A DNA stretch of 64,000 nucleotides, taken from Dicyema japonicum (taxonomy: Eukaryota; Animalia; Dicyemida). Under the pieces are notes generated by a model, which saw nothing but the letters and a program-made list of their open reading frames with translations, was not told the DNA's origin and made no database searches. Made by a program: the position numbers and the translations under genes. Below are positions 2,357-60,174 of this stretch, piece after piece. Where the stretch lies: contig RDEW01000014.1 of NCBI GenBank assembly GCA_011109175.1, positions 744,001 to 808,000 of the forward strand. Reading direction: 5' to 3'. Each line of letters opens with the position of its first letter. Within the stretch, counting starts at the first letter, position 1.

Positions 2357-4605
2357 ATGCTAGCAATATTTTTATTTCATCTTACATCACAAAGTATTGT
2401 AATCGAAGTACCGAATATAAGCAACACTAGATCAAATGAATACTGGTGTTACCAAACAAAAGCTCGAGATTATTACAGCACAGATAAACTTTTCATAAGT
2501 AAGAAATTTAACCTAAAAAAGGTGGATTTGCAGGAATGGGAGGAAACTCCCCGCCACATCATGCAATTTTATTTTTATGCCGAAATCCAGTCAAAAATGA
2601 TCGTTTATGGCAAATCTATTATTATTTAATTTTCAAGGAAAGGGTGCGAAGAAATCTATAAGTTTTGTGGGGATAACATCGAGTTATTATTTTCTTGGGG
2701 TCCAAAAAGTTCACCTTTACATTTCCCTGAGAATATGGGATTTAAGTTGGCTAGAAATGATACTTTTATTCTTCAAATGCATTTCGGGCAATTAGAACAA
2801 GGAAAGAGTACAATTTGACTTATTTTAAAAGAGATCCTGAAGTGGTTCAGTTTGAAACTATTTTTGAAAAAAATCAAGTTAAAATATTTAATATTTAAAG
2901 AAAAAACTTTAAAAGAATTGGACTTTCTATTCTGGCGAACCAAAATTTTACAATTTCGCCCGCCAAAAAAAGTAATTATAATAAATCACGTTACGATGTT
3001 GAAATACGTACATCGTGTCGATATACGGGAAAAGATATCTTGTACCCAGTTTTATTTAGAGTCCACACTCATAGTCATGGTATTTATAATATTCTCTCAA
3101 ATAGGTCTTTTCGTATCAAGCTTCGTTTTCTCGAATAAAGCCACAAACGGTACTCTGATAGGCTCAAGTAGTCCTCAGTGGAATCAGGTGGGCTTAAATA
3201 CACTTTCTTAGAGTTTTTATCCAGCAAATAGAAATGCGGCAATCTTTCCTGGAGATATAATTGTACCTTAAATTTCGTTAATGTTAAGCTATCCACGTGT
3301 CACTTTAACTCAGAGGACGAAGACAGAGCAATTTTTGCTGGGTGGAATCATAACGATGAAATGTGCAACTTTTATTTGATCCATTATTCGAAATATAACC
3401 GAAGGAGTTCATTCACGTGTCTCAAAAATTTATATGATGAATACTTCAGTGAAATTAGAGAGGTTATACCTACGGAATATGAATCAAAAATTGGATTTAT
3501 CAACGGTTTACCAATATTGGGGACACAAAATAAAATTGGTTGAATAATAATGAATTTTAAGCATTTAAAATTGAAAGCATTACTACAAGAAATGAAATAT
3601 ACGAAAAATCCGGAGTTAGGCTGGGGGAAATATCCTCAATAAGCGGTAGATGATGCAAACGGGATTTACATTTTTCACCGAGGACCCAAAAAGTGGAAAA
3701 ATAAGTTTTTCGAGTGATAAGTCTTAAGAAATTCGTTTCAAAGTTTAATTAAAGAAAATGCCATTTTGGTTCTGAAAAATAAAAAGGTCCTCCAATTCGG
3801 GGGAAACTTGTATTTGATTAATTATTTAAGGTTCACTATGCCGCATGGAATATTTGTTGACGACAATATTTGGACAGTCGACGCTGCTAGCAATAAAGTT
3901 TTGAAATGATAATTTAGATTTTAAAATTATCATTAAACGAGTCTTCGAAGTCGTCAAATATCCAACTAACAATTAAACCTTTCTTTAATGGAAATTTTTG
4001 TGTTCACCGACCGATACCGTGGTTTCGCGGAAATTTGTTTTCATTTCATCAGGGTACCCAGTGAGTAAATTTCAGGTATTGTGATAACTATTTGCTCAAA
4101 TATGATAAAAGTGGAGAATTCGTCAAAAAAGTCAATTTATCTGAGGTAAAAGCTTCGAGTATTCTGTGTTAATTATATTCAGTACCACATAGCCTCACTG
4201 TTAACGATGAACGTGAAATTTTGTGCGTCGCTTTACGGGGGTTCGGGTTCTATCGCTGCTTTGACTTTGACTTAAACGAAATTGAAGAAGGCGGAACATT
4301 TGAAAATGACTTGATGGCAATTTCCTTCGATAATTCCATAAATGGTATTCCTGGTGTTTTATTTTTGCCCTATTTTTAACAAATGCCAGTTTACCTGCCG
4401 ACAGATCTGACATTTTTGTCCACTTTTTTGATTCCAATAGAACGTTAAAGCTAGATCTCGGTGATGTCGTACGCTTTGACTTTATTTCTAGAATCTGCCG
4501 GCTATTCATGATATTGCTGTTAAAGATTCCACAATATATGCAGCTACATTGAATCAAAAAAATCCTGTGGCAATTTACAAATTTGAAATAAATCAGTTAA
4601 CTTAA
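2357..4605 (+). CDS. PAM: Bifunctional peptidylglycine alpha-amidating monooxygenase (PHM+PAL), about 640 aa, 14 micro-introns
   Basis: Introns: 2499-2521, 2610-2637 (GC-AG), 2808-2831, 2878-2900, 3080-3104, 3188-3211, 3263-3288, 3539-3561, 3705-3728, 3810-3830, 3898-3917, 4054-4075, 4159-4182, 4469-4491. The spliced product has a short hydrophobic N-terminus (likely signal peptide). PHM motifs: HHAILFLC, LQMHFG, RVHTHSHG, DEMCNFY. PAL motifs: IYIFHRG, MPHGI, SGYC, IPHSL, AIHDI. Three 1-nt indels must be assumed (about 3640, 3996, 4365). Confidence 0.92.
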
Positions 4606-4699
4606 ATATTTAAAAATTTTATTAACTTCCCAAAGAAATTAAAGTTACAGCTTCCTGTGGGTCTGCAATTTATTAGACGAAAGTAACAAATCAGACGTC

Positions 4700-4880
4700 A
4701 GTTGCACTGACAGAGAGCATTGCCGCGAAAGACGTTCACGGAGCTAATTCCGCTCCCGAGGATCTCGCAGCCTTTGACGAGATTGCGGTTCTAATTTTTC
4801 GGAGAACACCCAGCTTATTTCCCCCGAAATAAATCTTGTAAAACGACAACGAAACTTATTAAAGGCAGCCATTAACTAGT
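4700..4880 (-). mobile_element. CRE-like (REL endonuclease) retroelement 3' fragment
   Basis: DPRERN..RERLS..RGNAL resembles the C-terminus of the better-preserved CRE-like copies in this window. Confidence 0.6.
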
Positions 4881-5099
4881 TCCTTCGGTCGCAGAATCCT
4901 TTCAATGCCACACAACTCCATCCAGAACCAACAGAAAAAAAAAATTGTCCTTGCAGTTGTGAATCCCTTCCAGTACAATGAGGAGAACAAGCAATTCTTC
5001 TTCGTCCCATCCTGCCACTGGGCGCCATCTGAGATAGATCACATGACGCCACTATATTAGAAGAGGAGGTAAGGGGAAGATAGGAAGAGAAATCTTAAA

Positions 5100-5170
5100 C
5101 CTAGTAACCAGCAAAAAGATTCGAACCCAGGATCCATGTTCAGGTACGACTAAACGCTAGGGCACCTGGC
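5100..5170 (-). repeat. tRNA-like head (possible SINE or tRNA pseudogene)
   Basis: Minus strand GCCAGGTGCCCTAGCGTTTAG (A-box-like) followed by GGGTTCGAATC (B-box). No complete cloverleaf. Confidence 0.4.
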
Positions 5171-5352: not shown

Positions 5353-5978
5353 TTATTCAGTCAGTTTTTGAATTTTAGACATTTTGACCAACAATAGGGC
5401 AACCGCATGTCTTAAAATACCAAACTGATCCACACTAAACTAAAAAATTACATGTCCACTGAAAACTTGACAATCCGCAGTGGATCCGTCGTTCCTTATA
5501 AACCGAACACAAATACAAGGCTCCAGCACTCTCGAAAGACAATTAGATGAAATTGTAACCGCAATGCGCCATTGGATTGAGCAAAACCCAATACCACGTG
5601 CTCTCTTTTCTACCAAAAATTCCTTAAATCCTCTGTAAATGAAGATAAAGTTTACCGCTCAGGAAATTTCGATATCACATTCAAAAAGTACCTGAGCTTA
5701 AAAAAATAAACTAACGTGGGAATTTCGCTATCTTCAATATTTTTGGTGAAATAAAGACGAAAAGCTTCAGTAAAATACGAAACTGCAAGGTTTATCTCTT
5801 TTTGGCTCATTCTAGTTTTGAGAACTTTCAGCCTTTCGTTTGCTTTGGAAGAATTTATAAGACACAAATAAGCGACTGACTTGTTTAAAACATTTTTACC
5901 CTCACATAATAGTTCTATATCATCGATAGAGTAACTTTGTATTTTTTCTACTACTTGAATAGATCCTAACGAGGTCAT
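5353..5978 (-). CDS. COMMD5: COMM domain-containing protein 5
   Basis: Introns 5692-5715 (in-frame, probable), 5633-5655 and 5440-5466. C-terminus WRIAVTISSNCLSRVLEPCICVRFIRNDG...FSVDQFGILRHAVALLLVKM matches the COMMD5 COMM domain pattern. Confidence 0.85.
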
Positions 5979-6099
5979 ATATATTCAAAATAATTATTTA
6001 AAAAATTAAATAACTTATAATTATTTTACTATTAAAAACAGAATTTCTTGTATTGGTGTCGAAAATTCTGGAAAGGCTGGTTCTTGCGAAAATCAAAAG

Positions 6100-12933: not shown

Positions 12934-14038
12934 TTAATCAGGTCTATCAAGAAAAATTTTTCCGAGATTCCCCTTGTTCAGATAGCCAAGCACTTTAATA
13001 GCCGCTAAATAGTGGTTCGGTTTCTCTTCTCCTAAAAATGCTTATAGAACAGTCACCATTCATATCTCTTCTGAATAAGTCCCTCAAACAAAGCCACGTG
13101 TTCAAGGAACTGGTGAACATCATCAACAGGCAAGTCGAGTCCAAAGTAATCAACATATCTAAAATTTCTTGTCTTGTTAAAAACAAAAAGCAAATAATCG
13201 GCAATTGTAATCTCACTGATCGACGCCTGCTTTATGTTATCTCGAATAAATTTAATGGTAACTGCAAATGGCGAGTTTAAGGCCATTTATAGCGTTTCCA
13301 ATGACTGGGGCTATGAGACCCGGGGTATCGTAAATATATATTGGGGGATTTTCAGATATTTTGATTTTATTCGACACAGCTAAAGTGACCCCAGGAAGAC
13401 TTCCAACCGATACTGCCTTCTCTACAGATAACTAGAAAGGAATACTTTTATTGATATTAGCGGCTCTAAAGGAGTTTATTAAAGTAGACTTCCCGGTATT
13501 CGGAATCCCCAGTACCATAACGTTGATTTCTTCCCGCTAAAGTAAACTTTTTAATTACCTCGGAACGAAGAAATCTGTCACTCTTCTCCACACAATCCAC
13601 AATGAGGGCAAGCAGCTGAAACCTTAATTACTGCTTTAAACCTGGTTGCAAAGCTTGGGATCATGAGAATTCTTGAAATTTGTGAAAAATAATCTTTTGA
13701 CTCCCTCACTTTGCAGTTTCTCTTCAGTGTACTTCAGAAATGATCGATCAGCCAAATCAACTTTATTTAGAATCAAAATGCTCGGTCGGACGCTCATAAA
13801 ACTGGCAAAAGTTGAATTTCTTCCTGTGAAAGGAATCTATGAATATTCTTAATATCAGTACACGTGCATCGTGAACTTCAATAAGACAGTCTGCTTGCCT
13901 GATTTTTGCGTTGATCTGTCTTAATCCTGTTTAATGTGTGTCGTCAATGTTAATACCTTTGTGCATGTGACCAGGAAACCATTTTGAATATTCGAAGTTT
14001 TTAACAGTAAACTTTTTGCGAAATCTCACAATGACCAT
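12934..14038 (-). CDS. MTG1: Mitochondrial ribosome-associated GTPase 1 (RbgA/YlqF family), 7 micro-introns
   Basis: Introns: 13927-13956, 13837-13861, 13616-13641, 13537-13558, 13422-13445, 13241-13262, 13032-13056. Spliced motifs: WFPGHMHKG, IEVHDARIP, LNKVDL, GIPNTGKST, PGVT, DTPG, LKLAIC, ADYLL. One frameshift near 13065. Confidence 0.93.
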
Positions 14039-16262: not shown

Positions 16263-17675
16263 TCATGATATTGCACTGAAAATGACATTATGTCGACAAA
16301 TAGAAGGTCCCTGTTCCATGTAATCTTTCTTAGTGTGGACAACATTCATAAATTCGGGCTAATTTATATCTAAAAACTTACCATGGAGGCCATCATGCTA
16401 CTCCCAAAGTAAACGGCGTACAATTGTCTGGAATGTGAGGTTACTTTTGCTTCCATTGGGTTTGTCTACAGTGATAAACTCACTTTTACTCCATTTGTGT
16501 TTAGCTGGACGAGATTGTTCACATCTTTTTCGACTCTTTTTCCAAGATTTGGAAATACTGTGGAACCTCCACTCATCACAATATTCTGAAATGAGTCTTT
16601 GGGAGAATACCTTGAGAAGTTCTCTACGACAGTCTAGCGAGCAATTCATGACGGAATCGTAAATGAGATCAGAAACTGATCGGGTGAATTCAGGATTGTA
16701 CAATTCTGGCTTAAAAAACAACTCAGGTCCCATGAAACGTTCATACGACATATCAAAAGACACCTCTTTCTTCTTTTTTTGGTCAAAGAAGCTGTATTTC
16801 TTAATGATTTTATTCGGATCTGATTCTAATTTGGCAAACTCTGATCTGATGTCTTTGCACACATAGGAGTTTTGTTCCTACGGTAATGAGCATTACTGAC
16901 CTTTATATTCACTGCAATATCGAACATTTTGTCCTTGGAAAGATCTGGCTCTCGTTCTCTGACTAATTGTTGAATAAAGCTGTTGATTTCAGTGCCTGCG
17001 ATAGGCATGTATCTCATGCTGCTCCCAATCACGTAGCATTGAACCTTAGAATAGAAATAGTTTGATCTCACCACAGGAATTATGTGAGTCAATCCATGTC
17101 CTGAATCGATGACAATTCCTGTAGTCGGTCTGTTTGATTGAGGATTTTGCCACCCAGGAAGCCATTAAGGCCATCACTGCTTGTATTCCGATGTATATTC
17201 CGTTAGCCGAGAAAGTCTCAAACATCAGTTCCGCCAAAAATTCTCGATTTTCTGGTGTATTTAAAGGAGGTTCAGTCTTGGAGATTGATTTCAGAAAAAA
17301 TACCAGAAAAAAATTATGCTCAGTAGGATCTACACAGAGATGCCTGTAAATTATGCTGCTCATTAATTTTTCATAAATCGTATAGTCATTTATGATCCCT
17401 CCCTTCATCGGACACTATTAAAGACGTCAAATTTTGGATTACAATTGGATCGAGGCAGTTTTGTTCAACCAACTCATCTCCTATCCAATAGTCCAGATCT
17501 CTAAGCACTTTTTCGGCTTTAGTTCCTTTTTTGTAATAGGAAGGACCTAGTCCAACAGATGACGGTATGATGAACTCTGGAGTCTCTGAACCAGCGAAAC
17601 CAAATTTAGTACGACTAGTAGTTAATATAGAGAATACCCGGTTCCAACATCAATTACACAAGTTCTTCCACTCAT
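16263..17675 (-). CDS. ACTR3: Actin-related protein 3, 8 micro-introns
   Basis: Introns: 17615-17637, 17415-17442, 17277-17303, 17045-17071, 16878-16900, 16586-16610, 16466-16483 (or to 16489), 16359-16381. Spliced motifs: [66 protein letters not shown]. One extra base in TTTT 17145-17148. Confidence 0.96.
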
Positions 17676-22034: not shown

Positions 22035-23645
22035 ATGGTGAAATATTCATTCGTTCAAATTGCTAATAAAATCAGACTTATCATATCCGTAATTTACCGC
22101 CTTAAGAAGAATAAAAGTTTTTTGATTGATTTTTTAGCTCTTACCACGAATGCTCACTATAAAATTGGTGGAAATATCGCTAGAAAATTCATCAGAACAT
22201 TTCACGGAGAACGTCTCGAATTTGATTCTACGGATTTTAAAAGAACAATAAGAGTTGATAATTTCATTTTACACTAAGCGAGATTTTCATCCTCATATTC
22301 TAAAAATTTTTGAAAAAGAAAGCCATTTGAGGACAAAGAAAGATATATGCGACGCTGCAATGGAGATTTTGGAGGTTGTCCCCATCGTATGCTCAATTCA
22401 AACGAGAAGTTCAGTGGGAATTTGCGAAAAACTGTTATTTTCTGCAGTACACACTTCACTCATTTTTAGAGTAGAACAACACAAAATTATTATCAAACAA
22501 GGACATCGCGCAGAATTCTTTTATCTTTTGGTGAGCGGATCCGGTTATTTTTATTTTTTTTAATTTCAGTAATCGTAGTAGAACAGGGGTCAAATATATT
22601 AAAACGAACGATTCTCCCGGGGGAAACATTCGGAGTAAATCAAAATTCACCAATTTTAGGAACTTGGCCTTATTCTTAACAGGGGGAGAATGAAAACTGT
22701 TTTAAACGGATCCGGGACGTCTACTCTCTTAATGATTGACAAAGAAGCTTTTATGAAAATTTTTTCAAATGAATCAAAGGATTTAAATCAAAAAATTAAT
22801 TTTTTACAAGATCACAGGCTTTTTCAGAACTGGCCGAAGGAAAAATTATATGAAAACGAGTCCAAGATAGGATACTGTTATTATAGGTTAATGGTGGTAC
22901 TAATATAAGGGAAGGTCACGTAGTGAGCTTTGATGTCTTCCAATCGGATTGGATTTATTTTATAATTGATGGGAAATGTGAGTTATATCAGCTTTGGAGG
23001 TATTCAGATTCTCAGAGTATTCTTTTTCTCATTCTGTATTAATGTTGTCAAATATGAATGAAACAAAGCATGTGCCTAATGCAATGTGGTTTCCTGAACT
23101 TGAGAATATAGACGACGTTACAAATTTCTTGGTGTCTGCTGGAGCAATTAGAAAATACAGCAAAGAGGAGTATAACAGTAAGAAAAACTCTAAAATTAGA
23201 TGCCTTAAATCAATTGACCAGAAATACTAGAAAAAGTAAAAATATAAGTGAACGGGTGTTTTCTCCTAACCAAACTTACATCAGTGACGATAAATTTGAT
23301 GCAGTCTTACATTTGAAAAGCCTGAATCCAATGGATACTATTGTAACTGTCTTTCCTGAATTGATAGGGAGTTGAATCTATAGTTGAGACAAACCTTCCT
23401 AAAAGTACAGTTTTATATTCTCTTGGGGCAAATGTTTTGTTTTTGAATAAAGAGTTCTACAGGCAAAATTTGTATAATATAGGGAAACTGCGTCTTCGGT
23501 CTATGGTTGCTCATAAAGACTGAATTTTTAGATCTACACTTTTCAAAAAGAAAAGGATATAGAAAACTTAGTAAAAGAAACTAAAAAATGGGATAATTAC
23601 AAGCGGATAATTAAAAAGAAAAATTTATTTCACAAAAATAATTAA
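22035..23645 (+). CDS. Cyclic nucleotide-binding domain protein (CNBD2-like), multiple micro-introns
   Basis: Introns 22117-22137, 22254-22278, 22447-22469, 22544-22569, 22635-22659, 22887-22909, plus 25- and 26-nt introns near 23345 and 23505. Spliced: IIKQGHRAEFFYLLVSG, GETFGELGLI, FQNWP, SDWIYFIIDGKC. Extra C near 22380. Splicing of 22990-23300 is unresolved. Confidence 0.8.
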
Positions 23646-23744: not shown

Positions 23745-24900
23745 ATGTCAGTTGAGGAAGCCGGCTGCGTGGATTGCGAACGAGTTCCCTCGGAGTATGG
23801 CTATTCCAATCTTTTGTTTTAGCCATAACCATTCCCGTTGATCCCTTTTCTTTCTGGCAAGCATTTCTCCGAGTTCTTGCAAGAACTCAGCCGTCATTGG
23901 ACCAACGGCTCCCGATGATACGGTCACAACAGGAATAAATCGGTAGCGATCCCCGAGGCAAGAATATTTATTGATTTTTAGGTTCTCTGCAGTCGAAGCA
24001 GCTGCTCCGATTTGAAAATATTCGTGCTTGAGAACGTGTCTACACAAGTTGCGTCCCAGACCAAAGATCTTCCAGACGTGAAGGGGAAGAGGGTCATCCC
24101 GTCAGGTCTCTTTCCATCTCCTCGATCAAGACCCATTGGTTCAAGCTGTGCTGGGAAGCCTGTAGCCTTCAGAGCTCTGACGATCACATCGTTCAGAGCA
24201 GCATGACGTGGTCCCCTTACGGCGCTTTTTCTGCAGGACAGCGGGTGCAATCCCTTCGCATCGACTGTTTTCCCGCATCGGCATCGGTGCTCACGGAGAT
24301 CTCCTGTTAGTGCAAAAATCCGATTTCCTAGACGACTCAAGAATTCCAGCGTTGCAGGCGCAAGGGAACCAGACGTCTCAACAGCGAGTGGAACAAATAT
24401 AAAATTCTCTGTAGGACCACGTACTTTGCCCGTTTCAACCTCTCGGCCTTTTCATCGGCAGAACAGGCTCCAGAGGCACTTCGGAGTAGGTTGCAAGGGG
24501 CAAACATGTCGGTGCAGGAGACGTCCCACACAAGAGGTTTCCTGACTTCAAAAGGGAAGATGGTCATCCCATTTTGTCGTTTCTTGTCACGCATGCAAAG
24601 ACCGACTGATTCGAGCACGACAGATATCCGGCGGCGTCCAAAGTTTCGTCTAACGACTTCGTTCAAGGCCATGTGTTGGAGAAATCTGCTTGCACTTTTC
24701 TTGCAGGAGAGAGGGTGTAGGCCAAACAGTCGATCTGGTCTCCTCATCTGCACGGATGTGGCAAACTGACTTTTAATTCCAGTCGCAATGAGATCCCAAT
24801 ACAGACGATTCATCATCCAGAAAGGTTCCCAAAACTCCATTTGGAATGGCGTTGAGCCAGGCACCGCTCTTGGAGGACGCCCCCGACAACAAACATGCAC
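23745..24900 (-). mobile_element. Two adjacent CRE-like fragments (CCHC and REL endonuclease)
   Basis: [53 protein letters not shown] second diverged copy at about 24400-24900 has the same motifs. Confidence 0.85.
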
Positions 24901-25299
24901 GGCGATGTTGGTTAGATGACATTAACAGATCTTCAAAAGAATTCCGGTATACAGCATCGTCCAGACCCCTCTAAGAGAACATGGAAGGTAAGGAAAACTG
25001 ATGGGTACGGCTCCAGGCCTCACGAGCATGACCGGCGTCGGATGTTGTTTTTTATTTTAGTGAAAAGACCCCTTCCATTCCAATCAGGTCGCGAGAGCCT
25101 TACTGAGATAGTTAAGAAAGAACTATGGCCATGGTGCAACAAAATATTGTTGGAAGTATTTGATCAATTTATTAATTGCTCTCATGCACAATACAACTAA
25201 ATGACCAGCAAACGTGATAACTGATCGATTTTGTCAATTATGTCTTTTTTTCTTTTTTAAGAAATGTTAACAATTTATTACGGAAAAAGTGAGCAAATG

Positions 25300-25610
25300 A
25301 TCATATAGAGGCCGCCCTGACTGCGTGGCTATTCCTTCTGATGATGGCGATTCGCTCAAATAACCAGCAGCGTTCATATGGATCTTCTGATCGTGTAGAA
25401 ATCCACATCTCTAGACGACTCAAAAATTCCAGCGTTGCAGGCGCAAGAGAACCAGGCGTCTCAGCGGCGAGTGGAACAAACAAAAAATCATTGTGTAGGA
25501 CCGTGTACTTTGCCCGTTTCAACCTCTTTGCCTTCTTAGCGGCAGAACAAACTCCAGAGGCACTCTGGGGCAAACGTGTCGGTGCAGGTGACCTCCCAGG
25601 CAAGAGGTAA
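25300..25610 (-). mobile_element. CRE-like 3' fragment
   Basis: [42 protein letters not shown]. Confidence 0.85.
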
Positions 25611-26039
25611 TGTCTTATTTTTGTTACTCATGGAAAGTGTTACTTTTTTAAAACAAAATACACTAAGTAAAAAACAGTTATGATGACTAATCGTAGGGGG
25701 AGAACCAAAGAATGCTCTTCAATTCTTTTTGTTGGTATGAGTCCTTTATAGACGATACTGTCTGAAGTAAATGTTCACTGATGACGGCGCCACTCGTCAA
25801 GTCAAAGCATCTTAGATGTGTGGGACCTTCAGCCGGAATTTATAACAGCGAGATTGGAACCAGGGCCTATAAGGCCTTTTACCCGGCACTCGTTACACTC
25901 CATCACCAAATTATAAAATTATTATAATTTTAAATTTTTAGTCAATCTTCAATCAATTATTCAACATTTGGCTTAATGCATGCAAAAAAATCTAGTATTA
26001 ATATTTTGTATTTAATAAAGTTAAGTTGTTATGGCAGGT

Positions 26040-26174: not shown

Positions 26175-27126
26175 TTATAATTTTTTAATTATGTAAATTG
26201 TGCTGAGGTCAGTTATTAGCTAAAATTTATAATTTTTAATATTACCATGAGGATTATGACAGCAGAAATTGCAATTTGGATGAAAATATTGAACGGTTTT
26301 ATTTTTTCGCAAAATTTTGCAAAGCAGCCCTATACTAAATAAATTTAGATTACTTGGTTGCTGTTAGAATAATTTTGGTCATATTTGTTCGTTATGAGGC
26401 ATGCTGTAAGATTGGCATCAGTTAGATTAACCTTTAAATCAGTTTTACAGCAAGATTTGGGGTAAGGGATTGTCTGTCTGGTACCGTTCACTACTCCCGT
26501 CGAATCCCAATATTTATGATTTTTAAAATCGCTGCTGTTGCCTACTCCACAACATTGAAACTATTATTGAGTACTCAAGTCAACATAATTATCCAGATTA
26601 TCCACAATTTTCGTGTATGTCTGAGTTTTGTTGTAATTGTCAAAGATATTCTCTTTGAAATACTTTTTGATGGTAAATTCGATCTAAGATTCTTTAAAGT
26701 CATCACCTTGTTTTTCATTGTGAATAAGCAGATGATTCCTCCAAATAATGGCAACAAGCAAGGAAGTGATGATTATTGCGTACTTTAATAACGATAAATT
26801 AGTGCTTACAATTATCAGCTTGCATTTATTTTCCTTTAGAGCTCCGCAACAACCAAAAAGTCCGGTCAAAATTATGAATATTCCTAATCCAAGGACTCCG
26901 TAAAGGATGGAAGTTAATGACCCAAACACTTTTATAAGTCTGAATGTGTCCGAGATTTCTTTTGGGGCGTGTTTGGACAATAAGTGAATCAGTGGATCTC
27001 CAGCAATTAAAAAAATACAGATTCCTAAAAGTGTGAATCCGACTATCTGACGAAAATTGAAACAAAAATTACAAATGTTGGAATGTTGAATACTAAAAGA
27101 CAACATTTTTGCAATCTAATGCCCAT
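26175..27126 (-). CDS. Tetraspanin, 7 micro-introns (22-27 nt)
   Basis: Four hydrophobic helices, FGCCGALKEN, and large-loop FQCCG, PKSCC and GC. Introns include 27047-27072 and 26783-26809. One extra base near 26745. Confidence 0.92.
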
Positions 27127-35200: not shown

Positions 35201-35704
35201 AGATTGTTAATAATACGGTTGATTTTCGGCATTACTAAAAATTTGTTTTATTTATATTTTTTGCCGAAAATATTGATGTGCGCTCGGCGCATGAGTGCAG
35301 TCTTTGCATGTCACATATTAGTATAAGAAATGTATTTTTAATTTTGGATGAGACCCAAATTTCAACAAAGTATTTTTTTAAATATTATAGTTGTGACTGT
35401 TAAAAATTCTATGATTACATATTTGATTATGATTCAATTACGGTGTGGTACAATTATCATCTATAAAGATGGCTACGTTGAATAAAAATCTTGCCAGAAC
35501 TTATTTGAAGAGATTGGATTGCCTCCTGACAAGATGGGTAAGTTGATTGGATGCTGCAAATTATTATCCAAGAATGCAGTACAAATAACTGAAATTGTGA
35601 ACTTTTTTTTAGATAATGAGAAAAATTTTGGAAAACGCAAAAGCTTAATACAATTCAGTGTACAGCTATATTCAATAGCTCCTACGGAAAACCATCCAGT
35701 CTGG

Positions 35705-36950
35705 TACACGGCCAATACTACATCCCATCGTCTTCTGGAGTCCAACAAGGAGACCCACTGGGGCCTGCCTTGTTCAGCCTGGGAATTGCCCGTATCACAG
35801 GATATTGTTCCACTCCTCTGAGAGTATGGTATCTGGATGATTGCACCATGGGCGGCCATCCGAAGAATGTACTAGATTGCTTGAAAAGTCTGATAGTCCA
35901 AAATGCAACAGCTCGATGCTATCGATTCCCTCTTCTGTTCCTCTATTGAACGTATCACAAATGTGAAAGTTGACGACCAAAAGTGGGACCAAGCGACCCT
36001 ACCAGTTAGCCTGGGCGGACTGGGAATCCCTTCACCGAAAAATTTGGCTTGCCCCGCGATCTGTCCTTTTTGGGCTCCAGCCGACTATTGATCAGGATGA
36101 TTCTCCAACTCCAAACAGAATCATCTAAAATCACAGATATGTAGCATTTGAAAGGGATGATGCCTAAGCAAAAAGACCGTTACACGACCATCTGCGAGGA
36201 TAAATATGAGAGTCTTCTGAACCAATCAAACCAACACAGACGTGTCTGTCTAGTCACTGGAGTGGCGCTTGGATCAATGCACTCCCCGTTGGTAATGTCG
36301 GAAAACACCTTGACGACGATTCTGTCAGCATCAGCATCTCCACCAGATTTGGACTGGAGATTGCCGGACTCACAAATGGGTGTGGCGCCACCGTCGATTG
36401 TTATGGACACTATGCCCTCTCGTGTCGAAGAAGTGCAGGACGATTCCCAAGACACAAGGCGATCAACGGAATTGTCAAGCAAGCCCTAGAGTCTGCGGGA
36501 TATCCCGCCATACTTGAACCTGTTGGCTTGGACAGAGGAGACGGAAAACGTCCCGACGGGATCACAATTCGAAGAGAGGAAACCTTTGGTTTGGGACGCT
36601 ACTTGTGTCTACCCACTTTGCCCGTCTAACATTGTCGGGAGCGCGGTAGATACACTGTATGCCGCGGAAAAAACGATAAGAAATACGAAGCGCTACGCGA
36701 CCGATTCGCGTTCTAGTTGATTGTGGTCGAGACAACGGAATGAATAAGTGAAAAATCGCTTCTCTTCCTAAAGAAACTTGGACACCTAGCTACACTAAAA
36801 AGCCACGACGCTCGTGAGACCCGGTGGCTTCTCCAGTTGATCTCTGTTGCAATCGTGAAAGGCAACGCAACGTCGATAATGTCGGAGGGGTCCTCTTTAA
36901 ATGGATGAACGTGTTAATTATTTATGCATTTTAAATATAATGAATTTAAC
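35705..36950 (+). mobile_element. 5'-truncated CRE-like retroelement (RT, CCHC, REL)
   Basis: [54 protein letters not shown] across frameshifts. Confidence 0.9.
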
Positions 36951-43753: not shown

Positions 43754-46209
43754 GGTTGTAGGAAAAAAAGTCAAGTGGAAAAAAAAGTCAAGCGGAAAAA
43801 AAGTCAAGTCCGTAAGCGGAAAAAAAGTCAAGCGGAAAAAAGTCAAGTTGTCTTTTTTTAGTTTATATCGCATTTTTGTGATACTACTAGCATCTTTTAA
43901 TTTTTAAAAATTTTTTCAATACTTGACTTTTTTTCCGCTTGACTTTTTTTCTATTTTTGAAAATTTTTCCCTTATAAATTTTCGAAATTTAGCGCAAAAT
44001 GGAAAAAAAGTCAAGTCCGCTAACGAAATCACGGACTTGACTTTTTTTCCGCTTTGGTATAATCGCTTTGACTAAATCAATTTAAGAATTTCAAGGTAAT
44101 AATAAAATTGACTTAACTTTTTTCGCTTTGGTTTAATCTTTTTGACTTAATCAATATACGGATTTTAAGGTTATAATTAGGCGTATTTTAAATATTATGC
44201 TTTCCGCAAAAAATAAGAGACAAAATGGAGATAATATCAACTAACAAAGGAGGAAAGAAAATTTGTTTCAAAGGTTATATGTATACAAAGCACTCGACAA
44301 CAAAAAATTATATAATTTTTAATTGTGTAAAAAATCTTGACAATGATGCAGAGGAAGCTTAAGAACAGATCATAACTTTAAGTTTCCTAAAGAAGGAATC
44401 TCTCACAATCACGAATTTGACGAAACTCAAATAAAACTGATGAAGTTGTGCAACAAAGTAAAACTTATTGCAAAAAAGAGCCAAGAGAATTTTTTACAAA
44501 TCTATTCAAATGTTGTTTCTCAATGTGATACAGCATCCAGAATTATTCTCCCTTCTGCAGATTCTTTCAAGCGAACAATAAGGAATCAACGCTTGTCTCT
44601 ACCTATTCCAAAAAATATTTTCGATCTCGGAGATATTCCATCGTCTTTATCTTTAACTCTTGGTCCAGATTCAGAAAATTTTTTAATTTATGATAATCAT
44701 AGAAGAACCGATAGAATATTGATATTCAGCACCAAAACTAATATAACGTTATTGGCGAATTCAAAATCATGGTATATGGATGGAAATTTCTCCATGGCAC
44801 CATGTATCTTCAAGCAAATCTATTTTATCAGGATTCAGTTCAATGCCAGTGCAATTACAGTTATTTATGGAATATTACCTTCTAAATCACGAAAGATTTA
44901 CGAAGAATTTTTTGAGGCTATTCAAAATGCAATTCATAATTTGAATTTGGAATTTTGTCTTGAAACTATTATGGCAGACTTTGAAGATTCGGTATTTCGA
45001 GCTGTCCTTGCAGTATTTGGGAGACGAATACATATTAGAGGATGTTATTATCATCTAAGACAGTCAACCTGGAGAAAAATTCAAGAATTGCATCTAGTAA
45101 AACAATATAAAGAAAATATTAATTTTAACATTTTTTGCGCAATGATAGACGCTCTTGCGTTTTTACCCATTCAAGATATGGAAGAAGGAATAGAATTCCT
45201 AATGAATAATATGCCAGAAAATGTTCCAGATTCAAAATATATATTAGATTATTTTGATAGAACATATGTTCGCGGTTATTATCGTTGCTTAAATGATCGA
45301 GAAAACCCCTTAGCTGTTAGAATACAGCACATTGCTCCATTGTTTCCTCCAAATTTATGGAATGTGTATGAAGCTACACTCAATAATAAACAAAGAACAA
45401 ATAACTATTGTGAAGGGTGGAACAATAAATTATACAATTTGACGGGATATCGTCATCCATCGATATGGAATATTATATCGTCATTCCAAAAAGAAGAAAA
45501 AATGACGAAAACTATTATTGACCAGGATTCCTTTGGAAAAAGAATTTCAACAAGAACAAATAAAAAAACGATTGATAGACAAAAAAGGCTTTTAAATATA
45601 TGTCTGGATCGCCAGGACGGAAAAAAACAGTAGGAGAAGCCCTAAAAGCAATTGCATGGAATATTAAATATTCTTTTGATTCACATTAAATAATCCCTTG
45701 ATTCTCGTTAAATAAAAATCATATGTTTATAACATTTTAAAAAATTTTAAAAGTAGAAAAAATCTGTTTTATTTTTAGAATTTATTTCCACCACGTGTAG
45801 TTTTAGTTGTGGCGGGACATTTTAATTCATTAACATTAGCCAAAATTAACTATTTAAATAATTTGTTATAAACTCGCTTACTTTAAAATGAAACGATCAT
45901 GAATAAAAATCTTAATTTATAAACGGAAAAAAAGTCAAGTCCGTAATTTCGTTAACGGACTTGACTTTTTTTCCGTTTTGCGCTAAATTTCGAAAATTTA
46001 TAAGGGAAAAATTTTCAAAAATGGAAAAAAAGTCAAGCGGAAAAAAAGTCAAGTATTGAAAAAATTTTTAAAAATTAAAAGATGCTAGTAGTATCACAAA
46101 AATGCGATATAAACTAAAAAAAGACAACTTGACTTGACTTTTTTCCGCTTACGGACTTGACTTTTTTTCCGCTTGACTTTTTTTCCACTTGACTTTTTTT
46201 CCGCACTCC
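43754..46209 (+). mobile_element. Near-intact Phantom/Mutator DNA transposon with about 300-bp complex TIRs
   Basis: 8-bp TSD CTCGGACC (43746-43753 and 46210-46217). TIRs are built from GGAAAAAAAGTCAAG units, with a 19-bp perfect hairpin at 44001-44050. Confidence 0.97.
44225..45689 (+). CDS. MULE transposase with FLYWCH-like N-terminus
   Basis: KGGKKICFKGYMYT..C..CRG..HNH, WYMDGNF, IMADFE, GCYYHLRQ, RTNNYCEGWNN (DDE triad and CxxH present). Main ORF is 44440-45633; 1-nt shifts near 44345 and 45625 extend it. Confidence 0.92.
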
Positions 46210-47297: not shown

Positions 47298-49177
47298 TCA
47301 TTCGGAAACTATATAACACATTAATGACTCCCAAATTAAAATAATGTCGCCATCTCAAGCAGCTTGAAGTTATGCAGAGTTATCAAATGTAACAAAAAAT
47401 TATGGCATAGCATATTATCGACCAGAGTTTTCTTGTACTTCTCCACAAAGTTCTGACAAGTAACCACCAGATGAGAATCTCCCAGGCACCTAACAATCAG
47501 ATTTATCATTAAGACCTATTATCAGACAGAAATAGATTCCATAACTTCATCATTTCCTTCTCCCCTTCGTTTACATCGCTAAAATCCTCCATTAACTAAA
47601 AATATAGCCTAAATGAATACATCAGTCATCATGTAGACCAACCAGGCATATTCCGTTGATTTATCAGGCAAAGTCAGCTCATCCATTACTCACGGCTGCA
47701 AGGTCATTTGAATATAAAACAGCCTGAAATATCAAACACGTGCAAACTGAGAAGGCAAAGCGTGGACAGAAAGACCGGTCCTCTATGACTTCTTCTACTT
47801 GTTAACATACAGCATTATAGTCTCTGGTTTCCAGTACGACGGTTCGTAAGGTAGAAATCCCTTGATCTCCAATTTGTGACTTCTCATAGGGTTACCCTCG
47901 TAGGATCCGTCGAAGAATCCGTTAATTCCAATCTGAATGATCAAATTCCCCTCGCCCTTTGAGCTAACAAGGATCGACGACCACACAGTTGAAGGTCAGA
48001 CGGTTGTGGCTGTGCTTCAAATGAATCATCAGCGTCTTCAGGCTATAACAGTCGACGTTGCAGAAGGGACAAATAAACCCCAACTTTGAGCAAAAATTCT
48101 TTTGGTGTTTTCGGTTGAAATTAAACTCGAAAATAATTTTTATATCCCGAAACAGCCGATTCCCAGAAAGCCCTTAAATTTATAGCATTTTAACTTTTAG
48201 ACGGACTTGTGATCTCTCCAGCGTGTTCTATGGATTTATCGACGGTAAAGCTGATCATTGGGTGATTTCCATCAGTAGGGCCATGGAGATAATTTACTCC
48301 GCCTAGAAAGATTCCGTCTGTTGGAATCAACGAGGCAAAGTAATCTCCCGCAAGAATCTGGTTTCTGAACGAATTGGCGAAAAATGGAAGTGTGCAATAA
48401 TAAAGCCCGCCAATTTGGTTTTCTTGAATAAAAATAAACTTAACCAATTTTAAGTTGAAAGACCACCGTAGATGGGCGTAAATAGTCAGGATAACACTCA
48501 AAGGACAAAATCGCTTCATTTGATGAACTTGTCACCAATTTCCCCTCTCTAAACATCATTTTCAGCATTTTTTCCGAAATTCTGGAATATTTGGACAAAT
48601 CCTAGTCTTGGAAAGCCAAAAAATACATGGTAATTCGACAGTTTCCCTCTGATGATGAAAATGGAAAGAGATAGGGCAGTATCGGAGACTTTGATAAAGA
48701 AAATGGAAACCATTGGGTAATCTTAAATTTGTGATTGCCAATTTGAAGAGAATTTTGATCTTACATTTGTTGACTCTTTCCAAGAGGGAGTCTACAAAAT
48801 GGGAATTCTTGGGGAATTTTCTTTTAGTTTTAAAGTTGGTTCGGAAATAGGAGAGATTTCGCTTCAAAAAGATGGGCTAAAAATTAAAAAGTAAAATTAA
48901 TGTTAATTCAGAAGTACTCACTGAATAGGAATGCCTCATTTTTAGGAAATCATAGATTTGGACAGCCTCTTGAATTAATACATTACAAACTTGAAATTCC
49001 ATCCAAAAATATTTTATAGCTTAGGTTTGTATCCTTTACTGACTTCTTGGTTTTCTTCTGTGAGTTGATTTCTACTTTGAATACAAGATTTGAAGTACCT
49101 GACTGTTTTTTATTTAGAATGCGTTTATTCTCATTAGAAGCATCATTATTTTGCTTTGAATTACTTTTTCTTCTCAT
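47298..49177 (-). CDS. SUZ12: Polycomb repressive complex 2 subunit SUZ12
   Basis: Spliced motifs: FLDGISKAVQIYDFLKMRHSYSPIFLKRNLSY, zinc finger CPFCNVDC..LMIHLKHSHNRLTF, FDGSYEGNP, VEFS box EDFSDVNEGEKEMMKLWNL..CHNFLLHL. Introns include 49075-49098, 48969-48990 and 48877-48921. The 3' end and some middle exons are uncertain, and frameshifts are present. Confidence 0.93.
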
Positions 49178-50153
49178 AATCAGACTTTCAGGACACAGAG
49201 GTCTTGAGCACTATAGATTTTAAATAATTAATTATAATATCAATATTTTTATTTTTAATTATTAAAAGATTTAAATTCCGATTATTAGTTAAAATTAAAA
49301 ATAAACATAAATTCGATCCCTCAGCTACCCTCTGATAAAACAAAGTCAACGGCAATACATGACCACATCTCCACTAAAAAAATCCAAAGACTGGTTTGGA
49401 ACGATCTACCGGATGCCCCTCCCACTAGTTGCATGACTCGGAGACTACCCTAGGCAGAGATTGAGGAGGACACTAGTGCAATTACTTTCTAGACTCTTCT
49501 GCCTATAAGACGAATCGGGCTTTTAGTTTCTCCACCGGACCAGTTATCATTGATTCTACAAGAATCTTTCTCCTGCTCAGGACTTCACTTTTTTGATCAC
49601 TTCAGCAATTTGTTACTGTATGATTTAACTTTCTCTATATTTTGTTTCTTTTTGTTTCTCTTGAAACAAAACTTAGAGATTGTTAATGATTTCAAGTGAT
49701 GGACTGGCTTTATCAATCCGGACAGTATCAACAGCCCGGACGCTATGACATACGACAATTACTAACTAACATAAATTCGAAAGTGATATTGTTGTTGAAT
49801 GTTTCTCAATCTCGGGAAATCACCATCCTCTGCGGTCACCATACAGCATTAAGGGCTATATAACAACATCAGACGATTGCTTTCATCTTGTTCCCCTTTT
49901 GCCTTTTAGTAGAACAATAGACAAGGTCCCTCTATTGAATTGATTCATTTTACTTAACATTTATAGTGTCCAATTTTTTAATTACTTTATTGTTTTTGGT
50001 GGTTTTCTTAATTAAAAAGAATGAGTAGATATAAAATGCTACATGATGGTCATTTTTTTATTTTTGATAAAAGATTATAGAATATAATTATTAATATTTA
50101 GTATTACTTTCACTATCAGTTCTCTATTTTTAAGTGTTTTTATCACTACCAAC

Positions 50154-50273
50154 TTGTACGATCATTCTTGGCCGTAACCACCTGTACTCTGCCGATCACA
50201 GAAGTTAAGCGGCTATGGGCTGTATTAGTACTTGGCGGGGTGACCTGCCTGGGAACTCACAGTGTTGTACGTT
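50154..50273 (+). rRNA. 5S rRNA (divergent)
   Basis: About 120 nt with GATC..GAAGTTAAGC, TTAGTACTTGG..GGTGACC.CCTGGGAA motifs. Terminal stem GTACGA/TTGTAC, followed by a T6 tract. Confidence 0.92.
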
Positions 50274-52150: not shown

Positions 52151-52820
52151 AAATAATAGAAGCAAAGACATTGCTAACAGCTCATACCTCAACTGCCAAA
52201 AGACAGTGGCCAAAGCCAAGTGCTGTAAACACAATCTCCGGTCACGAGGGTGTCTAAGTCGCCCCCAATTGTATTCACGATTTTGCTGACGACTCCTACC
52301 CATTCTACCAACCGCACCAGGAGGTTTCAAATGCGACTAGACAAAGTGATAGAAATCTAAAAAAACGAGAATTATCACATTAATATCACGAGATCAATGT
52401 TCTTGAAACGCCATTGTTATTTTGTTATATTTGATTTATTCATTTGAATTTTCAAATCTCTAAGCAGATATCTAACATTGATATGGTGCATACATATCTC
52501 CTCCGTTTCCTCTTATTGATGTTAGTTGAGAGGAAGTTCAATTTAATATATGAATGCATATGGTAGGAATTTGCATGCACAGATTCAAAATTTTGCTACA
52601 AGATGGTTATCGGTTCTTCATGTACTCCACAAAACGATAGAAGAGACTAAGGTGAAATAAATAGATATTTTTAAAGAAGGCATGTCTTCAATATTTTATT
52701 TTCGACCAGATCGTGAATTTTTAAAGATTATTTATTATAATATTTTAAATATTATTCATTTATTTATATATTTAGGATGGCTAATCATAAATATATGACG
52801 CGAAAAATAAGTCTTATGTG

Positions 52821-53561
52821 ATGGTTATGAATTCACCTAAAAGGCGAGAAAAGAGTCTTGGTTTATTAACCTGTAAGTTTGTCGAACTGCTGAATTCCTC
52901 AAAAAATGGTTTACTTGATTTACGAGAAGTAAGCATTTTATAAAGTACCACAGGCAGCCTCAAAACTATCAGTACGTCAGAAGCGTAGAATTTACGACAT
53001 AACAAACGTACTCGAGGGAGTCGGTCTTCTTGAAAAGAAATCTAAAAATTGCATTCGATGGATGTAAGACAAATTTAAACTTTAGACCAAATAAAAGTGA
53101 TTGTTCTGAGGAGGCTTGTCGGCTTCGAAAAGAGATCGAAATTCTTAAAAAATACGAGAAGGATGCAGAGAAGGAGGTCACCGCTGTAAAGCAATGTACC
53201 ACAAGTATGTGGAATGACACCGACTGTTATCACAACCTTACTTTTGTTAAAAACTCTGACGTCTCGTCTGTTTTTGAGAATCAGACGGTTTTTGCAGTTC
53301 ATGCTCCACCGGAAGCTCAGTTATCTTTTCCTAGAACATTTGTTTGCTTGTTATTTTATTCTTAAGGATCGGAAAGGAGGTCAACTACGTGTTTCCTGCG
53401 ATTCAGGGACTGTGTCGGTTGTTCTTATGGATGAATGTACCAAAGATAACTCTAAAAGCACTCCCATATCCTTCAACAAGGTTGATTTTTCTGTGAATGA
53501 CGACTACCTTTTTAAAATGATGGAAAATGAAAGTCTGGCTGATTGTTTTAAGGATTTCTAA
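52821..53561 (+). CDS. E2F: E2F4/5-like transcription factor, about 222 aa, 3 micro-introns
   Basis: Introns 52929-52953, 53064-53085, 53342-53366. [32 protein letters not shown], marked box [14 protein letters not shown]-terminal [16 protein letters not shown]. The start could lie at 52777 if one base is missing. Confidence 0.95.
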
Positions 53562-56620: not shown

Positions 56621-56739
56621 TATCTCAAAATTTCGAGTTTTTGTTAACAATTAAGCCTTTTATAATGGCAACGAGAAGCTTTCGACACATGATAAAATTT
56701 TTAGTTTGAAATTTTTATTTTTTAATAAAATGATTTTTT

Positions 56740-58110
56740 TGCAACGTGAAAAATTTATGAACAATAAAATGTGAGGAAAAGCGGCTGCTGACATCACGGA
56801 GTAAGCGTTTCCGCGGACAACTGCGATACCAATTCGTTGCCTCAGCCAGACCGCTTCCCGCACGTCTTTCTTGCGGTGAGCCAATTTCTCCCCGATTTCC
56901 TTTAGGGAAGAGGATGTAATACTTCCGGCCGCATCAGACGTCTTGATTGCTACCGGTACAAAACGGTAGCGGTCTCCAATTTTGCCATTTTTTTTAATTT
57001 TGATTTTCTCGGCCTGATCGGCTGCCGATCCAGCAGACTGCGTCGAGCTGAGTATCATCGAGTTCGAGAAAGAATCCACAACAGTGCAGTCCCATACGAG
57101 CGATTTTCCCTCAGTGAACAGATAGTTAACCCATCCGGTCTTTTCCCATTTCCGCGGTCCAATCCCACAGGCTCTAGTACTGCCGGGAAGCCTGCCGCTT
57201 CAAGAGCTCGCATGACAATGTTGTTCATAGCAGCATGGCGGGGTGCTCTGCTCGCACTCCTTTTGCACGAGAGCGGGTGCAGCCCTTTGGCATCGACGAT
57301 CCCTCCACAACGACATTGGTGTTTGACGCAAACATCAACTCCCAGGCGTTGTGCGATCCCAATCCGAATACAGTCATTGTCCAAATGGGTCCCCAGGAGG
57401 AACACGGGAGTGCATTCAGCCACGCTCTGCTCCCATGGTTGGCGGCAGACACGAGGCATGCAAGACGATGCTGGTTGGCCTCAGACTTTAGCACGTCGAA
57501 GATATTCTTGGAGTCGATATCATCCCAGTCACGTTGCCTTGAAGGATCGTTCGGAATATCCAAACCAGTTTCACACCATTCGCGACGAGCTTTGTCGAAG
57601 ACTCTTTCCCAGGAAAGTCCAGTTGGAAAACGTAGGATATCTTGGACCAAAAAGCTTCCAATTGAGAGCGATAACACATATGCTGGAAATGCGATCTCCA
57701 GCGCCGACCTGAGACCCGTTCCTCCGAGGCGTGTAGGAAGCTTGCATTGGTTCCAACTCGGCACATCAAAGTGATGTTTAGAGCAATTCAGCTGATTTTC
57801 TCAATGTCCTATCCAGTGACAGGAGGATGTCACGATGTTTGAAGCAGGGAGAACATCTGAGAGCATATAGGAGTTTGAACAAGCCGATGCTATTCTTCAA
57901 AAGGAAGAACGCTGTATGACCATCGAGTAAGGAGAGTTTCTCCGTGACTCTAGAGAGTTCATCCTCTTTTGTTAGTAGATGGCTCCGCAGTTCCTTTTCG
58001 TCAAGTGGGCACCCAAGAAAGTATGTCCACTCCCTGGGTACGACAGCAATTCCAGGTAGTACCGAGTTGAAAGACTCGACCACGCTGATAAAATCACTCT
58101 CCGAGTATGT
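56740..58110 (-). mobile_element. 5'-truncated CRE-like retroelement (best-preserved copy)
   Basis: FLGCPL, QCKLPTRLGGTGLRSA, AWLNALP, HQCRCG, EPVGLDRGNGKRPDG, QRIGIAVVRGNA over four frameshifted ORFs. Confidence 0.9.
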
Positions 58111-58299
58111 GATATTTATTGATAATTGACCTTTGAAGTGAAAATTTTCTGCGGTTAATAATTTTTTAACAATAAATGACATCTTTAAAATAGGCCAAAT
58201 GGGAAAACGAGGATCTTAGACGTCGTGAAAAGTCTTCGCAGTAGCTTAAAGGCTGTGAAAAAAATTAAACTTTGCTGCTAGTATTCGATATCGTTCTAA

Positions 58300-59000
58300 C
58301 CGCCCCATTTTTCGCATACTAGAAGATTCTACTATTTCAACGACTGACTAATGGAATCTGGTCTCTGCGAAGTCCGAGGAAACTACTTTCACTTTTATTT
58401 ATTGCAGAATCGTTGATGATTGGAGGGAAGATGTTTATAGGGTGTCCAGTTAAAAAACGAATGCGGTTTTCCACAGTTGGACGGAAAAAGACCTTAATTC
58501 CATAAGCCACAGGTATACTCGACCTCCAGCCTATAAAGCTGGTTGTAGAAGTTAACCAAGCATTCCTCTAAGACTTGGTAGCAGTAAGTGAATATTGCCT
58601 TTACGAGATATAGTATACGTATGACATCTGGCGTTTTTTTAATATTTTGGGAGAAAGATAGTATGGAATCGAAGATTAACAGAAAAATCCCGGGATTCCG
58701 ATTCATGAAGTTTTCAGTTTAATGGAATGACGAAAGTTTCCCTCAGCCTTCGACGAGTAGAAAAGATTGTATATGACGATTTTTCGAAATACACTGTGAG
58801 TCTGTTTGTAGCAGCTAGGTCTCGATGTTAGCATTGTATTTCGTACAGAAATAGATTGAAGAGACTTGGCGTAAGCAGTGATCCCTGAGAAAAGTCATTG
58901 AGATCTTCATCTTCTCAGCCTCTACATCCAACGAGCTGGTTGACAAACAAATAGCTTCATTGAAACTTCTTTTAACGTAGCTTCATGTTTTGGGGATATT
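58300..59000 (-). mobile_element. Degraded LINE RT fragment
   Basis: QGSLLTPSLFNLFL and LTVYFEKSSYTIFS. Confidence 0.5.
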
Positions 59001-59213
59001 CAGTGCCAAAATACAACAAAAATAATTTCCTTTTCCCCATCTAATCAACCCACAAATCTAGATGGTATTCTCTTCTACAGAAGCCTCTGAATTAACCAAA
59101 ATGCTAGTATATGCTTACATTTATCCAAAATGTTACATTAAAAAATTATTTATAATAATTATTTTTAAATTATTTTTGATAATTAAAAATTAAAAGTGTG
59201 CTAACCTGTGTTA

Positions 59214-60174
59214 ATGTCTGAATTGATATCTGACTTTCATACAAAACTGCTTTCCTTATGGAATTGTGGGGCACCAGTTAGAAGAGATCAACTGGAAGAA
59301 CTACTAGGTGACATGAAGGTATCAATTTATTACTTATATTTACTAGAAAGTCATTTTAAATTCTCAGCTTCTAAATCAGAATATTTCTTCTTACAACCAG
59401 TCTCAGATACAACTTAGTATTTCAATATCTTCCTACCAATTAGGGGACATTCTTGAGATCGCTGTTCAGTGGACTGCCATGAACTATGACATTCCCACTT
59501 TCTTTCGTTATGTCACTCAACTGAAGACCCATTACAACGAATTTAGGTTAAAATGCTGTTTCAACTTTTTAGACAGCTGCCACAATCTCCCAATTTCTAC
59601 CATATCCATGGACTTTACTTACTAGCACTCCTTACTTCACCTTCTGAAAAGATGCCGATTTTCCATATGGTAAGATTGTTCCCCCATTTTTCAGGAGCTG
59701 GAATTGCTACCGGATTCTGCAGTTGAGAAAAATGTTTATATTCGTCACGTTGTGCTGATTGAGCGCTTCCTAGCAACTGGAAGTTATAATAAAGTGCAAT
59801 CAGTCTTTTAATCCCCCAGATTATGCTCTGTCGTTCTGCCCTTCCCTCAAATGTCTACGGGCCTTTTTTGGACTTACTTATTGACAAGATCAGGTTTTCA
59901 CGTTTTCTATATTTAGGAATGAGATTATTTCCAGCATTAATGCGACCACAATTCCGCTCGATGATGCCCTGAGTATGCTATTTTTCAAGTCAGAAGAGGA
60001 GTTAGTTGGATTTAATGTAAGAATATAATAATTCATAAGGCTGGGATTACAGTAGAAAACGGATTTGCGTATTTTAGGCGTAAATCTGAGCAAAGTCCGG
60101 CCTTTAATTCAAATTGGCCAAATCTTTGTCTTTTATTAATTAAATACGCTAACACGATTGAAAAAATAATTTAA
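59214..60174 (+). CDS. PSMD8: 26S proteasome lid subunit Rpn12, 7 micro-introns, no frameshift
   Basis: Introns: 59319-59346, 59417-59443, 59547-59572, 59670-59694, 59794-59819, 59894-59916, 60017-60039. RDILEIAVQW..DIPTFFRYVTQLK, GLYLLALL, NVYIRH, GSYNK, KIRNEI, YANTIEKII*. Confidence 0.96.

Follow-up and report, generated by a model that had tools for sequence, protein, structure and literature searches.

The stretch analyzed here, a 64-kb window corresponding to C46:744001-808000 of the Dicyema japonicum assembly, is nuclear DNA of an octopus-kidney parasite. Between positions 2357 and 60174 (counted from the first letter of the window) we identified nine host genes that are split by GT-AG introns, nearly all of them only 20-30 nucleotides (nt) long. 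Gene identity was established from Pfam or NCBIfam matches of exons searched singly, and six-frame or default annotation misses these genes because micro-introns break standard gene finders and read mappers. An earlier note, made from the DNA letters alone, had named PAM, tetraspanin, SUZ12 and MTG1 among ten genes, and the domain matches bear out all four names. The tenth gene of that note is perhaps a minus-strand candidate at 5356-5984, a chain of open reading frames (ORFs) with two or three possible micro-introns that had no family match and was left outside the curated set.

The first of the nine genes, on the plus strand at 2357-4605, encodes peptidylglycine alpha-amidating monooxygenase (PAM) and carries 15-16 introns, with Cu2_monooxygen at 2630-2815 and Cu2_monoox_C at 3232-3540. 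A Pfam search with ten exons from its N- and C-terminal parts returned a single match, Cu2_monooxygen, and what we take to be the PAL part was recognized by eye. The MTG1/YlqF-type mitochondrial ribosome GTPase (12934-14038, minus strand; eight introns of 22-30 nt) matches TIGR03596 colinearly on five exons, at profile positions 2-11, 13-34, 33-94, 117-145 and 140-190. The Actin hidden Markov model (HMM) is also colinear on five exons of actin-related protein 3 (ARP3; 16263-17675, minus strand; at least seven introns of 23-28 nt), whose assignment comes from the C-terminal region and the spacer after 'ASW' and is confirmed by an outgroup ARP3 (L038). A cNMP-binding-domain protein on the plus strand at 22035-23645 was recognized by a weak cNMP_binding match (E = 0.017), and every search variant, including one with a flat 15-60 nt length prior, gave it the identical eight introns of 22-26 nt.

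In the tetraspanin gene (~26181-27106, minus strand), positions 11-101 of the Tetraspanin HMM fall on 26687-27115 and positions 141-173 on 26348-26560; three introns of 24-26 nt are firm and one or two more are uncertain, and a word search with a tetraspanin exon gave no match. The NOT2_3_5_C domain identifies a CCR4-NOT subunit (NOT2/NOT3/NOT5 C-terminal domain; ~29412-31120, plus strand) with 12 introns of 22-27 nt, and SUZ12 (~47351-49210, minus strand) shows both Zn_SUZ12 (E = 2e-12) and the VEFS-box and has 11 introns, nine of 22-26 nt plus one of 32 and one of 45 nt. The last two genes, both on the plus strand, are an E2F transcription factor (~52800-53560; E2F_TDP, and E2F_CC-MB on 53003-53362; three firm introns of 22-25 nt) and the proteasome lid subunit PSMD8/RPN12 (59214-60174; CSN8_PSD8_EIF3K on 59674-59808), whose six introns of 23-28 nt were the same across search variants. 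For SUZ12, E2F and the NOT gene the 5′ end is provisional, as are the 3′ end of E2F and part of the tetraspanin gene.

The curated models of these nine genes hold 73 GT-AG introns (PAM 15, NOT 12, SUZ12 11, MTG1 8, cNMP 8, ARP3 7, PSMD8 6, tetraspanin 3 and E2F 3) with a median length of 24 nt and a mode of 25 nt; 70 of the 73 measure 20-30 nt, and the others 32, 36 and 45 nt. The earlier count of about 60 introns, almost all of 20-30 nt and up to 14 per gene, therefore stood, if slightly low. In building the models, GT-AG ends were imposed, a length prior from actin introns and interior composition were used, and corrections were made by hand from knowledge of the families. Lengths divisible by three were found in 14 of 70 introns, a possible shortage in a search that is biased against in-frame introns.

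Where adjacent exons match one family, the HMM coordinates give the intron length independently of the splice sites. Six junctions could be measured in this way, and all six agree with the models: 30 and 25 nt in MTG1, 25 nt in E2F, 24 nt in NOT2_3_5_C, 25 nt in ARP3 and 26 nt in the VEFS-box of SUZ12. In the NOT gene, the match to domain positions 27-57 stops at 30866 and the match to positions 58-87 sets in at 30891, leaving an intron of exactly 24 nt at 30867-30890. E2F_TDP positions 1-30 and 27-64 lie on the two exons flanking the 25-nt intron 52909-52933, and VEFS-box positions 57-82 and 82-130 lie on the adjacent SUZ12 exons flanking the 26-nt intron 47490-47515.

A second set of introns came from the actin family, which was matched exon by exon in a six-frame search of the genome and analyzed at 11 loci outside the window. 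At the best locus (L019), removal of three introns of 28, 25 and 25 nt, placed under a flat length prior, yields a complete actin of 376 residues that is free of internal stops. This protein then served as a ruler, in which shifts between reading-frame diagonals fix intron lengths without any assumption about splice sites. The validated set contains 30 introns with a median of 25 nt, 29 of them measuring 22-28 nt and one 78 nt. A GT-AG placement lay within 8 BLOSUM62 score units of the best placement in all 30 and exactly at the best placement in 18. The set does not include another two shifts (28 nt at L018 and 22 nt at L023), for which no GT-AG placement came that close. The actin paralogues differ in the introns they carry.

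Beyond the terminal dinucleotides, the splice sites hold very little information, as the earlier note had stated. Among 70 window introns, the donor triplets were GTA in 34, GTT in 26, GTG in 6 and GTC in 4. Position +3 (A 49%, T 37%) carries 0.20 bit, none of the positions +4 to +6 exceeds 0.12 bit, and the last exon base is G in 44%. All six donors listed in that note (GTAAG, GTTTT, GTGGG, GTACC, GTCAG and GTTGA) occur among the curated introns. At the 3′ end, position -3 is T in 51%, A in 30%, C in 16% and G in 3%, and positions -4 to -6 are 54-60% T. This does not amount to a conventional polypyrimidine tract, as the T-richness is found at -3 to -6 alone (51-60% T) with C at 14-16%. The interior of the window introns has a G+C content of 24%. 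The actin introns, which are defined by homology, agree, with T in 47% and A in 34% at +3, T in 73% at -3, and 21-22% G+C in the interior.

No CTAAY, YTRAY or TNAY motif was found above shuffled introns when the 98 pooled introns were searched. Adenine is enriched at -8 in the same pool (46 of 98, p = 0.004), and the peak shifts with intron length, from -7/-8 in introns of 20-23 nt to -8/-9 in those of 24-25 nt and -9 in those of 26-30 nt, which corresponds to roughly +16 to +18 when counted from the donor side. The earlier note's observation of no consistent branch motif is thus correct for a sequence motif, but a weak positional A patch at -7 to -9 is present.

We hold with high confidence that the window is Dicyema japonicum nuclear DNA whose genes are split by many ordinary U2-type GT-AG introns shrunk to 20-30 nt, mostly 22-26 nt. 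They share a single length class, GT and AG ends, a near-absent consensus, an AT-rich interior poor in C and G, T-rich positions -3 to -6 and a weak, drifting A patch. As for membership in the U2 type, GT and AG ends were found in the 30 actin introns, while in the window these dinucleotides were imposed and one PAM intron may be GC-AG; the genome also encodes major small nuclear RNAs (snRNAs) U1, U2 and U6 with intact pairing sequences.

These snRNAs were found in a genome-wide search that covered U1, U2, U5 and U6 of the major spliceosome. For U2 there were 28 matches with a best score of 155 bits; at least 17 are strong, and the branch-pairing GUAGUA is intact. U6 gave 13 copies over the cut-off (best 110 bits) with ACAGAGA and AGC intact. 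U5 gave 15 matches (best 83 bits). The 12 copies of U1 (at loci that include L007-L012) are about 146 nt long and retain an unchanged 5′ splice-site pairing end, ACUUACCUG; they score at or below the Rfam gathering threshold (best 69.0 versus 69.5 bits) because the region of the 3′ terminal stem is shortened. An inventory of U1 and U2 had been suggested in the earlier note, and both are present; a match to the SF1 helix-hairpin domain was also found on a gene fragment (80.5 bits). The splice sites have thus lost their consensus without matching changes in the pairing sequences of the snRNAs U1, U2 and U6.

How such introns could be told from exons is less simple than their lengths suggest. The narrowest possibility is a pure ruler, in which any GT and AG about 22-28 nt apart would be spliced and length would be the sole information beyond the dinucleotides. 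The extremely narrow length distribution, the low information at +4 to +6 and the lack of an enriched branch motif all speak for it. Inside 8.2 kb of internal exons, however, we counted 177 GT...AG pairs spaced 20-30 nt apart, compared with 70 real introns, or about 2.5 exonic decoys per real intron. Length and GT/AG are insufficient because of these decoys, and other information must be used. The earlier suggestion that definition rests mainly on length was right about the tightness of the length window, but length does not suffice. Real introns differ from decoys in interior G+C (24% versus 41%), T at -3 (51% versus 14%), G at -3 (3% versus 28%) and A at -7 to -9 (91% versus 63%), a contrast that is partly built into the window models, which used interior composition, and that the actin introns show independently. 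A score for composition that was trained only on the actin introns tells introns from decoys with an area under the curve of 0.88; here too the models' use of composition may contribute, yet the actin introns share the low G+C content. Decoys are only weakly depleted in exons (z about -2), the 31-41 nt control spacing gives the same result, and this measure is confounded by our own models. We regard a pure ruler as improbable.

The explanation we favor for the shrunken U2-type introns adds two elements to the ruler, which is seen directly in the intron lengths. Micro-introns would be recognized as whole units, that is, by intron definition, by a conventional major spliceosome, and both intron ends would have to lie at a nearly fixed distance from each other over a short span. 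The A patch may act as the branch point, some 16-18 nt from the 5′ end, and the contrast in base composition with the exons could supply the specificity lost from the degenerate splice sites.

Dicyemids are not the only animals with introns below 30 nt. In myxobolid myxozoans, the other such lineage, the median intron measures 22-27 bp and the splice sites are just as reduced (Hadjez et al. 2026), and the window could on these grounds have come from one of them. The assembly, with 67,542,437 bases in 377 contigs, agrees exactly with Dicyema japonicum, for which Lu et al. 2019 (Table 1) give 67.5 Mb, 377 scaffolds, a GC content of 36.7% and 48.9% repeats. The window has a G+C content of about 37% (33-41%) and is rich in long interspersed nuclear elements (LINEs), which fits the 49% repeats published for Dicyema; the published Henneguya assembly has 74.9 Mb, 93 contigs and 29% GC (Hadjez et al. 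2026). A myxobolid source is thus very unlikely, and the dicyemid origin guessed in the earlier note is correct.

An origin in a ciliate or another tiny-intron protist, Paramecium-like or Stentor-like, is more unlikely still. Ciliates too are known to have introns of 20-30 nt, but the best actin locus, once free of its introns, and the window genes read in the standard code with ordinary stops. The gene content is of animal type (SUZ12 with Zn_SUZ12 and VEFS-box, PAM, E2F with CC-MB and tetraspanin), and the assembly is that of Dicyema japonicum.

It was also considered that the introns might be an artefact of chaining chance ORFs through abundant GT...AG pairs. A naive search, in which dynamic programming maximized coding length under a flat 12-150 nt length prior with GT-AG ends in the nine gene regions, placed 23 of 65 introns (35%) at 22-26 nt on the sense strands, compared with 7 of 75 (9%) on the antisense strands (Fisher p = 3e-4) and 48 of 488 (10%) in five pooled shuffles (Fisher p = 4e-7). 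When a codon model was trained on these regions and the length prior left flat, the class of 19-31 nt took in 41 of 77 introns, and the mode lay at 22-26 nt. Permissive chaining does assemble long chains from either strand and from remnants of transposons, and shuffled sequence yields about 100 pseudo-introns, but the controls lack the 22-26 nt peak, the flanking exons match consecutive HMM positions, and the best actin locus gives a complete protein with ten further loci in the same length class, so we rejected this explanation as having next to no chance of being right. Two search designs were discarded as gene models: a codon model self-trained on long ORFs of both strands was polluted by transposon and antisense ORFs, and the pure length-maximizing search with a flat prior over-chains and runs into wrong frames, so the latter was retained solely for testing lengths without bias, alongside its controls.

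Several points weigh against shrunken U2-type introns as set out above. The introns of the window are predicted from genomic sequence, and about one in ten of the first-pass introns was clearly wrong and had to be corrected by hand. Their tightness and AT-richness are partly built into the window models; the actin set is free of such bias and agrees. The A patch is weak, and its role as a branch point is putative. Finally, 1-2 nt frame breaks in conserved exons of ARP3 (minus strand, ~17128, +1) and PAM (plus strand, ~3642 and ~4000) are explained by no intron, and the local models there are uncertain.

Introns of the GT-AG, GC-AG, GT-TG, GT-GA and GA-AG types were all tried at these three breaks and rejected, as the neighboring sequence is exon-like and the homologue spacing fits read-through only. 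A -1 shift also occurs near codon 333 at three actin loci (L022, L023 and L025), and one frame break sits in a T5 run. Assembly indels are the simplest and most likely reading of the breaks; for those in PAM, real decay of the gene in a nerve-less animal is a possible alternative.

PAM intron 2 can be drawn in two ways, as an unusually long GT-AG intron of 40 nt (2603-2642) or a GC-AG intron of ordinary length, 28 nt (2610-2637), which give different junction peptides and between which homology does not decide. Two micro-introns are in frame and free of stops, 17045-17071 in ARP3 (minus strand, 27 nt) and 3810-3830 in PAM (plus strand, 21 nt). A rule that excluded such introns proved wrong, as homologue spacing indicates that both are removed, and the outgroup ARP3 (L038) supports the former. 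If retained, they would silently add nine or seven residues, and their retention would therefore escape nonsense-mediated decay. The sole word-search relative of the ARP3 exon came from an animal genome with 33% GC and kilobase-scale GTAAGT introns that is not dicyemid (loci L038, L039 and L040; Logan SRR11236233 and SRR11236195; ENA ERZ27269834).

The micro-intron phenomenon is confirmed by these results, yet it was already known and has been published several times since 2007. Aruga et al. 2007 (PMC2222250) compared cDNA with the genome and reported 16 dicyemid introns of 26.2 +/- 1.9 nt, and Ogino et al. 2010 reportedly dealt with dicyemid introns in 40 genes. A median intron of 27 bp, with about two-thirds of predicted introns below 30 bp, was given by Zverkov et al. 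2019 (PMC6543705), and the Dicyema japonicum genome with RNA-seq-guided gene models by Lu et al. 2019. For D. japonicum, Hadjez et al. 2026 (PMC13644364) described a 5′ site reduced to GTa, a 3′ site reduced to AG, and two to three weakly conserved A whose distance from the AG grows with intron length, and pointed to convergence with the ultra-short introns of myxobolid myxozoans. The remark that similar sizes are reported for dicyemids was thus true (2007, 2010, 2019 and 2026), and removal of the micro-introns from mRNA in this species is established by cDNA-genome comparison and RNA-seq (PMC2222250; Lu et al. 2019; PMC13644364).

Compared with this work, our introns differ in nothing essential. 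The published lengths (mean 26.2 nt; median 27 bp; or, with long outliers included, mean 38 bp) match our median of 24-25 nt, and the GT followed by a weak A, the AG, the A stretch that shifts with length and the high intron density are the same; at +3 our introns have T (37%) as well as A (49%), compared with only A in the published site. Our analysis goes beyond the published dicyemid work in the T at -3 (51-73%), the count of exonic decoys, the snRNA inventory for the species and the candidate U12-type introns. The myxobolid introns share the median of 22-27 bp, the GTa...AG ends, the positional A stretch and canonical U2 snRNA, and differ in their independent origin in a cnidarian lineage with another genome (Hadjez et al. 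2026).

Tiny introns of ciliates (20-33 nt in Paramecium, 15-16 nt in Stentor) are likewise narrow in length and AT-rich inside and are handled by a canonical spliceosome, but they belong to unicellular organisms whose genetic codes are variant. The possible shortage of lengths divisible by three would be a further likeness. In Paramecium, the introns keep a stronger GTA...TAG signal. Introns as short as those of Dicyema probe the minimum of information on which a spliceosome can work, and the exonic decoys make plain that more than length and GT/AG goes into their definition. The practical value of the present work is a checked intron catalogue for nine genes.

The genome also contains snRNAs of the minor spliceosome, one each of U12 (L017, 85.4 bits), U11 (L029, 67.6 bits) and U6atac (L030, 37.0 bits against a cut-off of 33); U4atac was not found in the genome. 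Candidate U12-type introns with the full ATATCCTTT and TTCCTTAAC consensus measure about 48-52 nt, roughly twice the U2-type length. A strict pattern of 5′ site and branch site occurs 11 times, compared with 4 for the reversed control, and at least three candidates have coding flanks (L033:1501-1552; L034 at ~1495-1542, minus strand; L037 at ~1495-1546, minus strand). One candidate falls within a PLC Y-box, and the PI-PLC-Y match that follows it immediately begins at profile position 50 (E = 5e-24). We found no paper on dicyemid minor splicing in the literature. It is possible, at about even odds, that two contrasting extremes of splicing coexist in one genome, with U2-type introns reduced to GT/AG ends, an AT-rich interior and a ruler of 22-28 nt, and a retained minor spliceosome serving a few full-consensus U12-type introns that bottom out at about 48-52 nt. 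If true, a single cell would show the natural minimum intron size for each of the two spliceosomes. The minor-spliceosome snRNAs and the ~50-nt U12-type introns may merit separate study.

Outside the nine genes, much of the window is transposon debris, with LINE and reverse-transcriptase fragments between the genes and an ORF for a MULE transposase at 44347-45630. A repeated element is present in three copies (23751-25627, 35476-36900 and 56663-58215) with long open frames on both strands; one frame has a conserved motif of the 'GKRPDG...LVWD' type, and the element had no Pfam match. The 5S rRNA gene of the earlier note was recovered on the plus strand at 50154-50273 (RF00001, 73.1 bits) as the sole Rfam match in the window, and no tRNA was found in the 64 kb. 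The palindrome CACGTG occurs at 18 sites in the window (among them 3294, 3414, 13095, 13861, 30962 and 47737) against 4.9 expected, and none of 100 shuffles reached 18.

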